Notes: generated from the letters alone by a model not told the origin. Counted from the stretch's first letter, positions 44,663-49,221 are shown. The stretch: 64,000 nucleotides of DNA from Trichosphaerium sp. ATCC 40318 (GCA_038496445.1 JALMLS010000093.1:248001-312000); one strand, 5' to 3'. Translations and numbers: made by a program.

Positions 44663-47600
44663 TTACTGAACGTAAGCAGTGGTTAAAATACATTCACTAA
44701 TGCTCTTAGAAAGTGTTCCCAAACAACTACTTTTCGAGCCTCTATTGTACAATCTCATGAAAACAGTGAAACATTCAACTTGTAGCTGTTGGGCTTTCGA
44801 CATCTTTACAGTAACTGTATAACTACCTTTGTGTGCAGTTCTAATAATATACTCCTGTGGGCCATAACCTAAATAAGTCTAGTGAGTATCTTTGGTTGCT
44901 ACTGCTCCTTCTAGGACAAAAAGTTGTTTTCTAAATTTGTGTATTGTTACCTTTGCAATCTGTTGACATTGTGCCTCCACTTTTTGTCAAGTTATTGAAC
45001 ACATTACAAATCTCTCCAGACGGTTCGGTAACATGTAGTTCTACATTAGCTGTTGGATGATTCCATGAGATTACAACTCTAAAACAAGAATCAGCGTATT
45101 CTGTCTTTTCTTTTTGAATAGAATAGAATCATACCGTAAATCACAGACTTCCACCATAGGCAAGAAAGCAGTGATGTGGCTATACTTTGAGAATAGTTCG
45201 CGCAATGAGCCATTGTGCTCCTTTAACAACAAAGCTTTCTTGTAGATCCGGAGGAAATCTCGTAAAGCTATAACTTCCACATGTTTTAGTTGAAATCTAA
45301 TATCCCATTTCGTAGAAATGACTTGTAGCAATAACTCAAGACTCTCTATTGGTTTTACATCTTCTAAATATAAAGCAAGGTCCCTACAAACATGTCAGTA
45401 TAAATATTACGTCTAAAAAGTAAGTACCAGTAAGATAGAGGTTGCTCCTTGCTTAAATCAAGTATTTTTCTTTGAACTTTTTCAACAATGGTGTTTGCCA
45501 ACTGATTGCCAGATTCATGTTTTTCTTGAAACTCTTGACAATGCCAAGCAAATTGACGATATAACTCGACATCGTTTATACGAATTTCGAGTAATGTTGA
45601 TAGCAGAAACGGGTGTGAAACAGGAGAAATAGGTCCAATGCTATCCTCAACGAATTGTTTTACTGTTCTATAAATAAATTTAGTTCGTTCCCATCTGTAG
45701 TCCCACTTAATGGAACACTTACTTCGATGGTTGCCAAGAAGCATTCTCAAGTATGATTTTGACATCTTTGATAGGTATCTTTATGACATTGTCAACATCA
45801 ATAAACTTTCCATAACTTGCTGGTAGCTGTTTATAGAGCCAATATGGATTATCAGTAAGCTTTTTTGCTGGCTGTTTGATCAAATACCTTTCACCTACAC
45901 TTGGATCCACTGGTGTACTATCCCACCTGCTTGTTCTGGAAGGCGTTGGTGTACTGTTTCTCGGTGTTAGTGTATCCCACCGACTTTTCTTTTGGGGTTG
46001 GTTTGCACCCATAGTAGAGTGCGGCGTATCGCGTTTTGGTGAGTCCCATCTGCTTTTCTTTTTCTTTTGTTTCTTCACAGTGTTGTATCGTTCACGTTCT
46101 GAATTCTGTTGTTTTGGCAGCTTTGATCTCATCCTCTTAAAGCTAGAAAGTAATAGCGACTTCTCTGTAGTACTGGTCACTTTGCTTCTGTTCCTAGCGT
46201 TAAAAGGTTACAATCATTATTACTAACTAGTACGTACTCAACAGTTGACGAACCTCGCGTGGATTCCAGTAAAGACAATGACTCTTTGAAGGCATCCAAT
46301 CTCCTGGTGATAAACATCGGTTTCTTCTTGAGGTACGTGCAGAACCTCTTCGTTCCATCTGGTTTTTAGCCTCAGTGGAGCGTTGTCGCTTTGCTGGTCT
46401 GATTAGTTCCTCATCACATGATTTTTCTACACTATCGACTGGAAACATTTTCCCTTTGGTAGATAATCTAAACACGTGTTTGCAACAGGCATACAGCAAG
46501 TTCAAAATTTGTACCTTTTATCTAAGGGTATGACATATCCCATTGGACTCTTCCAGTTTGATATACATGGTGGTATTTTCCAATCGATATTTGCTCCGTT
46601 CTTTGATATTTTTCTCGGAGGAGAAGGTATTCTTGGTGGCTTTCTAGAGTCATCATCTGCTATAACTTGAGGTTGTGGTTTGTCTAGCCGTTCCCATGCT
46701 TCACGTAAAAGTTGTTCGGCTATTAACAGAGTTTAGTTCATCCACGTGTCAAATGCTTTATGTAAAAGTTGTACCTGTAATTGTAATTTTAGATGGAGGC
46801 TTCTTTTTTACATACAAGCTCCCTCGCATAGTATTTCTATGTCGTTTACCTAAAATGAAAGTAAATGTATGCAAGAAAAAACAAATAACATAGTTTTAGT
46901 TTTATAGAGATTGTACCGTTTAAATGACCCAAATATTCATCAGGGGTGTTGTGTAGCGTATTGCACATGAATATTATATTTCATGTTTGATGTACTCTGT
47001 TAAAGACGACAAAACAATCATTGATGTCTCTGGTGTTATAATCTGATATTTAATTCCAATTTCGGCTACTTGAGATTGATCATCAATTTGATTCAATTTA
47101 CCACGTGCCCAATCACGTATAATACTATTTTCAAAGCAACAATGTGTAGCCTTGTTTATATCTATTTTGATTGAATGTATTACTCTCCCTTGAGTACCAA
47201 AATGCAACGAAACATTTGCATCTTTTTCGCAATCCTTGATTCTACCTACAGTATCATAGAATGGATGACCACTGCTTTCTTCTATTTGAAAAACTACAAC
47301 TTGTCAGCACTACCACTACTTTTGATATAATATCATACCATTATCAACTATACAACCACATCCGGTAGCATACAGTAGCCCAAGACGTGTATTTTGTACG
47401 AAGATATTTCTTGCAATAATGTTGAAAGAGATTGAACGCTCATTTGATATATCCTGAAATGTGCCGCCACTCCTTGACGACCACTTCCTCAGTAAAGTCT
47501 TATCGATTTTCTTACATGATGTAATACAATGAACGGGTTTTGCAAACATTGAAGGAACAAAGTTTCTGTTCCCAATTGTGTTAATGCCATCAGAAAATAA

Positions 47601-48942
47601 CAAAAAAACGTCATGTGAACTTTTTGTATCTGATAGAACCCTTGCCAAAGGCTCCAGGTGCGTTGCTCCAAAGTATTTATGAGACTTGATATATGATCAA
47701 TATGTGATACATCTTGGAAATCACGTGCATACAACACTGTTAAGTTGAAAGCATAAAGAACAATGTTTGATGGATTTAAGGTCGTCAGGACTTCGTTTAG
47801 GAAATTCAAGTCTCTAGTGGTTTCAGTTAGTATTTTTTGTAGTATTAGGTAGGTTGGATATCATTATTGACATACTTGGCAGCAGTGGCTTCGTGACTCT
47901 TTGAGATATCCCATAATATTCCAACTTTCATCGGTGATGCGAAATTTTGTATGGCGGCACTAATCGGAAGTATGTTACGGCTACAGAAGTATAAAAAGTC
48001 TTCTGAATGCTGAACTATACAAGGCATAATCTCTTTTGTTTCTTGTAAGGAAATATCACAGTAATTTTGATGAGGGAGTTTGCTAATACTAGGTTTGAAA
48101 TAAAACTCATAAATCTAAAAATATAATTAAAACAAAAACTCACTTATCAACTCTCTCAAAGTACCTCTTCATCCATACGTTTGCTGAAACCATGTGACTC
48201 GCATCCTTGTATATATATATTAGGTTCTCCTTTTGGAGGATCATGGACGATGCCAGTTATTTCCATATCGTTAACAGCGGTTGTGTTAAATGGAACTCTG
48301 AGGGAGCTTTGATACCAACCTTCTCCTAATACATGATTATCAATTGGCGTGCTATAACGATAATATCCATACCTGTTTTGGTTTCTGTCTTTAAAAACCC
48401 ACCAATCTTTAATAACATAACACGTGACTCCAACTTTTTCATGTGACTAATCTTAGTACGAAACACATTACCAACAACATTCTCAACCAATCCAGTAGTT
48501 TTTTTATCAAACATCTGTGCGCTTACATCAAAAACACTTTTGGCTAAACACAAGTCAGAGCAATAGTTACATTTTCATTCCATGCCATACCTTTTTCTTT
48601 CTTGACTACAACTGCTTCGACAAGCGTACCATCAACGGACATGCTGTATTTCTCGATTTTTGATTCTGCAAGAAAAAGTCAGTTAACGATAATCCCTTTG
48701 TCAGTCAGGTTTTTTGCATACCATTCGCTGTGTATAGCTCAAATTCAGCTTCGTCGATGTCGCTGGTGGTGTTGTTTGTAAAACAAATTCGAATGTCAAT
48801 TTCTATCGTGTATTAACGTACATGGACGTTGTTTAGCGTACTAACCGTATTTAAATGATTTAACTGCGAAAGTAATTGAAACATTGTCAACACGAAGACA
48901 TTTGTCTGAATTGACATCTCTTATCGCTATAGGTGCTTCCAT
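44663..48942 (-). CDS. VIT - vWA-like - helical/TPR-like - DUF2135(YfaP-like) protein with spliceosomal-motif insert; apparent frame lesions
   Basis: VIT: FTN...EAEFEL...YSMSVDGTLVEAVVV.KEKA..VF...GLVE...GNVFRTKI. vWA-like: GILWDISKS, YFGAT, LFSDGINTIG, YQIITPETSMIVL. Then EQPLSYWDLAL, KWDIRF...EVIAL. DUF2135: DLRVVISW...VELHVTEPSGEIC...TKSGG..S.D..GYGPQEY. Confidence 0.8.
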
Positions 48943-49221
48943 AGCAAGTATACAATTACACAATAAGACAGAAAAAAGGATTGCTTCTTCGATTTTGACA
49001 CCCAAAGTCCCATTCAACAAAACACAAAACGAAGGAAATTACTGACTCCTACTTCAATTAACTCAGCAAACGATAACTCCACACGAACAACAACATATCC
49101 AAGCTTCTTTTATTGCAATAACAACGTACATCTATTGGAAGGAGAAATACAATTCGACGTTTTTCAACTTTTTTTTCTGTTTTGGTTTTTTTTTTTGATC
49201 AAAACTTGAAAGTATCTTACA

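Follow-up and report, generated by a model that had tools for sequence, protein, structure and literature searches.

In the amoeba Trichosphaerium sp. ATCC 40318, a gene on the minus strand of a 64,000-nucleotide stretch of genomic DNA (GCA_038496445.1 JALMLS010000093.1:248001-312000; hereafter, the window) is a member, specific to its lineage, of an amoebal family that has expanded and whose scaffold is of the bacterial type. This scaffold consists of a head, with a VIT region, a vWA domain and a hybrid beta-sandwich, and a tail, with a TPR-like helical repeat and a DUF2135 beta-sandwich. Judging by similarity to the parent genes, short docking peptides of three spliceosome proteins, SNW1, CRNKL1 and SF3B1, were copied into the variable, disordered linker between the head and the tail. 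Based on the comparative analysis described below, we tentatively favor a bait or decoy role for this linker, with docking or competition at the spliceosome being about as likely. This particular copy of the gene may have been recently disabled by a frameshift. The features of the gene are summarized in Table 1.

The linker spans approximately 300 residues, from the hybrid sandwich to the strand that re-enters the scaffold. The copy of the "SNW" peptide of SNW1/Prp45 was the only one of the single exon pieces to pass the threshold in the Pfam search (SKIP_SNW, positions 41-91 of the 158 in the model, E 1.6e-14), and it also matches the SNW1/Prp45 chains in the PDB (E 1e-10, human residues 224-268). 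In this genome, SNW matches are confined to this copy and the true gene in contig C132, and a word search with exon 10 yielded one match, an 84-residue SNW fragment. The copy of the N-terminal peptide of CRNKL1 (Clf1/Syf3) reads VKKKPPSKITIT / AEQLLREAWER ... VIADDD and can be aligned with the CRNKL1 of this same genome (L015, Pfam HAT_Syf1_CNRKL1_N) with a score of 80 (z 10.8, 0 of 2000 shuffles). A degenerate DNA pattern for AEQLLREA is found at two places in the 70 Mb of the assembly, namely, in the window and in a locus of contig C252 that bears HAT_Syf1_CNRKL1 repeats, with 0 matches for the control. The shared Trp in REAWER, which we take to be unusual among species, would point to the lineage's own CRNKL1 as the source. 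Finally, the first part of exon 12 contains three motifs resembling the U2AF ligand motifs (ULM) of SF3B1 (46075-46037, 45994-45962 and 45940-45911), each consisting of a basic patch, followed by S-R-W-D and a TP-rich flank; the alignment of exon 12 to the N-terminal exon of the genome's own SF3B1 (L013) has a score of 111 (z 8.9, 0 of 2000 shuffles). The CRNKL1 and SNW1 pieces are fused in a single exon, exon 10. Random capture would very rarely bring together three independent parent genes of one machine, which we count in favor of a bait.

What the linker shares with the parent splicing factors is the RWD motif with its basic patch (SF3B1), the SNW motif (SNW1 224-268) and the CRNKL1 N-terminal peptide, whereas the HEAT and HAT repeats are missing from the linker, so that all three parent folds are absent. 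In the case of SNW1/SKIP, a protein of about 500 residues, only 51 of the 158 model positions are represented. These are pieces, not splicing-factor paralogs. A reading made earlier from the sequence alone (hereafter, the sequence-only reading) had listed four spliceosomal mimics. Three of these, SNW1, CRNKL1 and the SF3B1-type RWD, are confirmed, but the fourth, exon 11 with its PAKRQR run, has no identifiable parent in Pfam, the PDB sequences or the Atlas. The two basic runs described there as resembling nuclear localization signals are both present (PAKRQR at 46397-46380 and KKQKKKK at 46075-46055), but the second one is better read as belonging to the first RWD motif, of which it forms the basic patch.

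Several additional observations on the copies and their parents deserve mention. The genome's own SNW1 (L008:2138-2971, contig C132) reads IPPCVSLWKN at the name-giving motif, and the copy in the window (46582-46517) keeps ISNWK, like the human, worm and fission yeast chains in the PDB; thus, it is the copy, rather than the presumed parent, that more closely resembles the canonical motif. A continuation of the SNW copy in another frame (LDAFKESL...) was rejected (z 1.2). The true SF3B1 gene (G000:C5:83250-86759, L013) resides on the same contig as the gene studied here, about 210 kb away.

The copied cores bear a signature of selection. Nei-Gojobori counts between the copies in the window and the parent genes, which are indicative rather than a formal test because the blocks are short, give a proportion of synonymous differences (pS) of 1.0 and a proportion of non-synonymous differences (pN) of 0.07 for the CRNKL1 core of 13 codons, where all 13 residues are identical and every synonymous site is changed. 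For the extended CRNKL1 block (23 codons), pS is 1.02 and pN is 0.21, and for the SNW core (22 codons), the respective values are 0.72 and 0.29. The flank of the SNW core (12 codons; pS 0.52, pN 0.49) evolves neutrally. The conservation of the cores together with the saturation of the synonymous sites implies that the copies are old and that purifying selection held the cores while the spacers drifted; neutral evolution of the inserts, which would have counted against the sequence-only reading, is therefore not what the motif cores display. The conserved residues are those that bind the host partners, namely, the Trp of RWD and the SNW motif. From the maintenance of the cores by purifying selection, we infer that the linker works by being recognized.

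The scaffold to which the linker is anchored was identified by comparison with full-length relatives. In tblastn searches, these relatives align colinearly with the gene through VIT, vWA, the hybrid sandwich, TPR and DUF2135 (E 1e-9 to 1e-18). The colinearity with relatives that contain Pfam VIT and DUF2135 bears out the assignment of these domains in the sequence-only reading. The VIT region, which includes GNVFRTKI at 48472-48449, is 39% identical (E 8e-8) to a paralog exon (L012:6549-6701) that is itself recognized as Pfam VIT (E 2.8e-8). The vWA domain contains residues of the MIDAS (metal ion-dependent adhesion site) type, WDISKS (D-x-S-x-S) at 47913-47896, G-A-T at 47675-47661 and LLFSDG at 47603-47586; WDISKS, YFGAT and LLFSDG occupy the invariant columns of the family (D248/S250/S252, T314 and D337), and the Asp that precedes G-G-T in the vWA of the family is replaced in this copy. 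Exon 8, which encodes the hybrid sandwich, is the best conserved exon, with nearly all alignments in the search of representative proteins extending to its last residue. The AlphaFold model of the N-terminal half of a family relative (P0006:35-575; predicted local distance difference test score of 86), standing in for the protein encoded in the window, matches the structure of ITIH1, a heavy chain of the inter-alpha-trypsin inhibitor (6FPY), in a Foldseek search (E 7e-32, about 580 columns), in support of the previously suggested analogy with the ITIH scaffold.

After the linker, the protein returns to the scaffold via the strand VKIILENASWQPS, followed by a TPR-like helical repeat with KEQPLSY / DLALYLED and WDIRF. 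The KEQPLSY / DLALYLED signature is split by an intron and matches EEPQSYRDLALA of the relatives (tblastn). The AlphaFold2 model of the C-terminal module of a relative consists of one strand, nine TPR-like helices and a beta-sandwich, and all Foldseek matches of this module are to TPR of the peptide-binding type, with none to the DUF2135 sandwich. The family-invariant Arg of EEPQSY-R-DLA falls on a splice junction in the gene (45427-45384): the spliced codon is Trp (..PLSY W DLAL..), and unspliced read-through would give Arg. DUF2135 is divided by an 82-nt intron between ...STDCK and GYGPQEY, with each half falling below the Pfam threshold, and its exons are 71-73% identical to paralog exons in contigs C10 and C224.

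The family is large and its linkers are diverse. There are 7 unsplit DUF2135 matches in the genome and 11 places, including the one in the window, that match the split first half of DUF2135, which implies at least 18 family members; VIT matches number 28. We fetched 18 loci and assessed the content of the linkers mostly by eye, and by Pfam where stated. Host-derived pieces were found in the linkers of at least 9 of the at least 18 paralogs. The linker of the contig C73 paralog contains RNA polymerase II (Pol II) C-terminal domain (CTD) heptads (Pfam, E 1.5e-5); Ras-family pieces are present in the paralogs from contigs C125 and C19, with a SNARE motif additionally present in the latter (Pfam). 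The paralog in contig C10 carries histone H4, with the tail and the fold obvious by eye and a weak Pfam match to the histone fold, and the one in contig C224 carries H2B-like, repeated H4-tail and H3-like pieces. The remaining linkers contain RS, RGG, FG and CTD repeats (contig C87), a WASP-like polyproline-WH2-acidic arrangement (contig C44) and actin pieces (contig C74). Some of these inserts are incomplete or eroded and do not look like working modules. Thus, different host pieces occupy the same linker position among the paralogs, as the sequence-only reading had predicted for swappable inserts. By eye, a stretch of the contig C224 paralog (L018:3540-4065) recalls CDC5L (..GKKAKRRARDK..) and MFAP1 (..FLQKYYHKGAFF..), so this paralog may mix chromatin and spliceosome themes. 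In the contig C73 paralog (L005:5429-6199), a helical stretch resembles, by eye, the C-terminal lid of Hsp70, with no Pfam match. Each copy of one duplicated pair of paralogs (L001:7690-8499 and L002:2-418) is immediately preceded by a leucine-rich-repeat gene that lies upstream of it on the same strand.

Outside this genome, only distant relatives were detected. A search of 1.8 billion representative proteins with exon 8 as the query (46977-47303) gave 27 weak matches, with at most 40% identity, and no ortholog was found among these representatives (best match at 40% identity) or by word search, which fits the birth-and-death pattern of defense families. The scanned relatives carry Pfam VIT, TPR and DUF2135, and most of the full-length matches look bacterial, judging by their signal-like starts and TonB-type inserts. 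These VIT-vWA-TPR-DUF2135 proteins (for example, P0006, P0009 and P0023) have the same domain order as the amoebal gene, with a variable linker in the same place, and share with it the signature motifs TS.IVL..Y..YEI.PP (in the amoebal gene, only up to HEI), EEPQSYRDLA and GYGPEEY, with 26-41% identity in the larger tblastn blocks. Many of them open with a hydrophobic, signal peptide-like stretch (by eye), whereas the amoebal copy lacks a signal peptide and further differs in having introns and eukaryotic inserts. The linker is a variable site in the bacterial relatives, too: a CarboxypepD_reg-like domain occupies the same site in 7 of the 9 scanned bacterial-looking relatives, with a match to a TonB-dependent-receptor Plug in 3 of these 7 (the insert-bearing relatives are P0009, P0019, P0021, P0023, P0024, P0026 and P0001). 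The display of inserts may thus predate the amoebal expansion. The combined CarboxypepD_reg and Plug insert resembles the N-terminal part of SusC-type transporters.

Table 1. Features of the scaffold gene, listed in the order of transcription (positions are those of the window)
Feature	Positions	Strand	Basis or remark
Whole gene	44663-48942	minus	about 16 exons; sequence reading, exon walk, colinear tblastn to family proteins
Exons 1-5, VIT region	48165-48942	minus	tblastn with P0006, P0004 and P0020 (VIT part)
Exons 6-7, vWA domain	47339-48114	minus	tblastn; motif coordinates; invariant columns of the family
Frame disruption inside vWA	47673-47678	minus	last upstream codon (47677-47675) overlaps first downstream codon (47675-47673)
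Exon 8, hybrid beta-sandwich	46977-47299	minus	ends in the family motif TSMIVL..EYIKHEI; representative search, tblastn
Exon 9 and first part of exon 10, N-terminal peptide copied from CRNKL1 (Clf1/Syf3)	46649-46836	minus	local alignment
Remainder of exon 10, "SNW" peptide copied from SNW1/Prp45, WKIPPCISNWK...IPLDK	46515-46648	minus	Pfam, PDB
Exon 11, basic, Ser/Arg-rich, holds PAKRQR	46243-46467	minus	simplest canonical path, introns of 47 and 49 nt
First part of exon 12, three SF3B1-type ULM-like motifs	45911-46075	minus	alignment with SF3B1 of this genome
Last part of exon 12 with exons 13-14, scaffold resumed	45135-45790	minus	tblastn to the TPR part of relatives
Exons 15-16, DUF2135 beta-sandwich	44663-45078	minus	tblastn to relatives, E 1e-9 to 1e-15

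The gene itself is real. The window is eukaryotic DNA with 36% G+C, part of a 70-Mb assembly, and the limits proposed in the sequence-only reading proved correct, with an ATG at 48942, a stop codon at 44665-44663 on the minus strand and GT-AG introns of 39-159 nt in matching phases. Exons were searched singly; codons split by introns were carried over the junctions, and short splice paths were enumerated by local scripts. VIT, vWA and DUF2135 fall below the Pfam threshold in every single exon, being too short exon by exon, and the Rfam scan of the window gave no matches. A DNA search of the genome revealed no second copy or haplotig, the only match being the paralog in contig C10, and the protein search of the same genome with exon 12 returned the self-match only. 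After exon 12, a candidate 28-nt intron was dropped in favor of a 55-nt one that has a better acceptor and preserves the same frame. Between exons 10 and 12, thousands of splice paths are open, so that the sequence does not decide whether exon 11 is included. The three frames of the 46.2-46.5 kb stretch gave nothing relevant against the PDB sequences and no usable match in the Atlas. The GDW..KS..WNP pattern of exon 11 is, we presume, similar to the Cwc25/Cir_N motif; a fourth spliceosomal piece of the Cwc21/SRRM2-like or Cwc25/Cir_N-like type is unsupported, the similarity to the Cir_N genes that were found in the genome being too short.

The protein begins with MEAPIAIRD, and two close paralogs seem to begin alike, with M-(E/D)-A..I..D, in agreement with the earlier statement that there is no signal peptide. 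Immediately upstream of the ATG, the minus-strand frame (48943-49038) is open and hydrophobic (..ILFSVLLCNCILA), without an ATG. A mini-exon further upstream that escaped notice might, in principle, supply a signal-like beginning, but this is disfavored because the M-(E/D)-A start is apparently conserved in the paralogs.

The anatomy of the protein, the origin of the copies, the selection on their cores and the variety of inserts among the paralogs are observed, whereas the binders of the bait and all later steps are what we infer. Under the bait reading, the linker would present imitations of exposed spliceosomal peptides to foreign factors able to bind, cleave or modify the originals; the attacker would next be held or reported by the head and tail, in the manner of ITIH4, which uses its susceptible region and MIDAS. 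The machines mimicked in this family are typical targets of effectors of intracellular bacteria. We tentatively prefer this reading because there are many themed paralogs and no orthologs, because many of the inserts are partial, and because ITIH4 provides a precedent. In ITIH4, the susceptible region lies C-terminal to the vWA part, where the amoebal family has its linker. ITIH heavy chains and the amoebal family share VIT together with a vWA domain that is inserted in the hybrid sandwich and contains a MIDAS, and one study describes an exposed protease-susceptible region of ITIH4 and a requirement for the MIDAS to hold the protease (PMC7793589). There are also differences. The C-terminal region of ITIHs, which are secreted proteins of animal plasma that undergo C-terminal processing and are linked to bikunin chondroitin sulfate, is of another kind, whereas the amoebal family lacks a signal peptide and ends in TPR and DUF2135, and its linker carries copies of intracellular host peptides in place of a generic protease-sensitive stretch. 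The protein encoded in the window is not an ITIH and is ITIH-like in the head only.

Other known systems offer more remote parallels. In plant NLRs with integrated decoys, paralogs likewise carry different host-protein copies at one position, but the copies in the amoebal family are mostly short disordered peptides, and the similarity is conceptual only; NB-ARC or NACHT nucleotide switches and LRR or similar sensor repeats have no Pfam match in the exon pieces (E up to 0.1) or the relatives, and neither TIR nor any other known immune signaling domain was seen. The link to YfaP drawn in the sequence-only reading holds to the extent that Escherichia coli yfaP (DUF2135) is part of the yfaA-yfaT-yfaS-yfaQ-yfaP cluster, adjoining yfaQ, yfaS, yfaT and yfaA, where yfaS presumably encodes an alpha-2-macroglobulin. 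However, the bacterial alpha-2-macroglobulin cluster shares only DUF2135 with the amoebal gene, YfaP being a short single-domain protein, and Pfam domains of the alpha-2-macroglobulin family (MG domains, thioester) are absent from the gene pieces and the relatives. In the library searched, we found no paper mentioning DUF2135, none combining YfaP with alpha-2-macroglobulin, and only unrelated ones for "integrated decoy" with "amoeba".

Several lines of evidence weigh against a bait. The residues conserved in the cores are the partner-binding ones, so that a tether or a competitor explains the selection equally well. The similarity of exon 12 to SF3B1 is at the motif level only, with no phmmer match against the PDB sequences. 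Four family members, comprising two near-identical pairs, have short plain linkers, which implies that the scaffold has some role without an insert. No known immune domains are found in the gene or its neighbors, and no RNA runs are listed. Finally, there is a frameshift in the vWA domain at 47673-47678, and a TAA codon at 46976-46974 directly follows the conserved EYIKHEI. Owing to this shift, as assembled, and this stop, a single uninterrupted protein is not confirmed.

These two lesions raise the possibility that the copy in the window is dead, that is, a young pseudogene that yields no full-length protein. We consider the case for and against this to be evenly balanced, and it would be compatible with either a bait or a tether role of the family. 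The frame breaks between the first and the second vWA motifs, and homologous sequence is present in both frames: the upstream frame encodes a helix homologous to that of the paralogs, and the downstream frame encodes YFGATHLEPL, which is homologous to their G-G-T motif. The closest paralog (L012) contains a 45-nt intron exactly at the position of the break, and breaks in the open reading frames suggest the same intron in L018 and L019, whereas the copy in the window lacks an intron there. No credible intron bridges the break; the only available GT..AG bridge, of 26 nt (47710-47685), was rejected, because it would delete the sequence coding for the helix that is homologous to the paralogs. The change of frame reflects either a genuine departure from the ancestral frame or an error of one base in the assembly of an A-run, and the single-base offset at this A-run leaves room for the latter. 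In the exons of four paralogs, about 13 kb of coding sequence, no frame breaks were seen, which makes widespread assembly indels unlikely.

At the second lesion, where this copy has the TAA, the checked relatives continue with a proline-rich (PP) motif. The stop can be spliced out: a canonical 159-nt intron, with the donor at 46995 and the acceptor at 46837, bypasses it. This bypass intron contains a different open frame of 44 codons (46849-46980, minus strand), with the reading ...HNTPDEYLGHLNG, whose terminal GT donor is in phase with the nearby acceptor before 46843. In the paralog from contig C10, 13 residues separate H-N from the donor, the same count as in this open frame. Possibly, this open frame is what used to be the end of exon 8 before an insertion of about 30 nt displaced it, and its resemblance to an older exon struck by a second lesion speaks for a dead copy, as does the failure to find any protein of this locus in the protein libraries. 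Yet all fifteen introns are canonical GT-AG introns with matching phases, exons 9 to 16 are free of stop codons, and the MIDAS-type residues and the motif cores are intact.

Instead of baiting foreign factors, the copied peptides might dock the scaffold onto their normal host partners, which would be UHM-domain factors in the case of RWD (UHM, U2AF homology motif) and partners on the NTC/Prp8 side (NTC, nineteen complex) in the case of the SNW and CRNKL1 peptides. The tethered protein would then regulate, sequester or quality-control spliceosome parts, and the paralogs would do likewise for chromatin, actin and trafficking. We consider this nearly as likely as the bait. That the most conserved residues are the partner-binding ones, that the basic patch directly precedes RWD as it does in SF3B1, that a TPR module of the peptide-binding type adjoins the linker, and that basic runs are present and a signal peptide is missing all fit a tether. 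There is also a precedent for an intracellular VIT-vWA hub: Dictyostelium Vwa1-5 are cytoplasmic VIT-vWA proteins proposed to be binding hubs, and Vwa1 pairs with the F-box protein FbxwD (PMC10539598). These proteins are of the VWA5A type, however, a separate lineage that has a conserved C-terminal domain of its own and for which the TPR-DUF2135 tail and captured inserts are not described. Furthermore, it is hard to explain under a tether why at least 9 paralogs would each tie a different core machine to the same scaffold, the lack of detectable orthologs is unusual for a housekeeping regulator, and some of the paralog inserts are partial or worn copies.

Neutral accretion, whereby a disordered linker that tolerates insertions would have piled up functionless products of exon shuffling or retro-copies, is consistent with the variable linkers of the bacterial relatives, the neutral evolution of the motif flanks and the absence of a recognizable parent of exon 11, but is improbable given a 13-residue peptide that is unchanged despite saturated synonymous change, three parents from one machine here and themed sets in the paralogs, and the retention of binding cores alone rather than random parent segments.

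Returning to the bait reading and extending it to the whole amoebal family, one could imagine a non-NLR innate immune system in which each paralog guards one host machine, the spliceosome, chromatin, Pol II, actin and Arp2/3, or Rab/SNARE traffic. We regard this broader proposition as rather unlikely as it stands. Copies of the exposed peptides or domains of that machine would be shown by a linker flanked by the ITIH-like head, with its MIDAS, and the TPR-DUF2135 tail, and a bacterial or giant-virus effector attacking the bait would be trapped or reported. The bacterial relatives, with their CarboxypepD_reg-like and, sometimes, Plug inserts, would use the same principle, so that the display of baits would be an ancient property of the scaffold.

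Should the family work the way it looks, it would constitute a sensor or trap with integrated baits that does not belong to the NLRs, and its host would be a free-living amoeba exposed to Legionella-like bacteria and giant viruses. The inserts could in that case be read as a catalog of host peptides worth guarding, and the SNW1 and CRNKL1 threads together with the SF3B1 ULMs would point to the spliceosome as a target. Even under the tether reading, the copying of docking peptides would be a new means by which a cell directs a single scaffold to many core machines. To either picture, the locus in the window contributes one exon that fuses pieces of two splicing proteins and a clear signal of selection on a copied 13-residue peptide.

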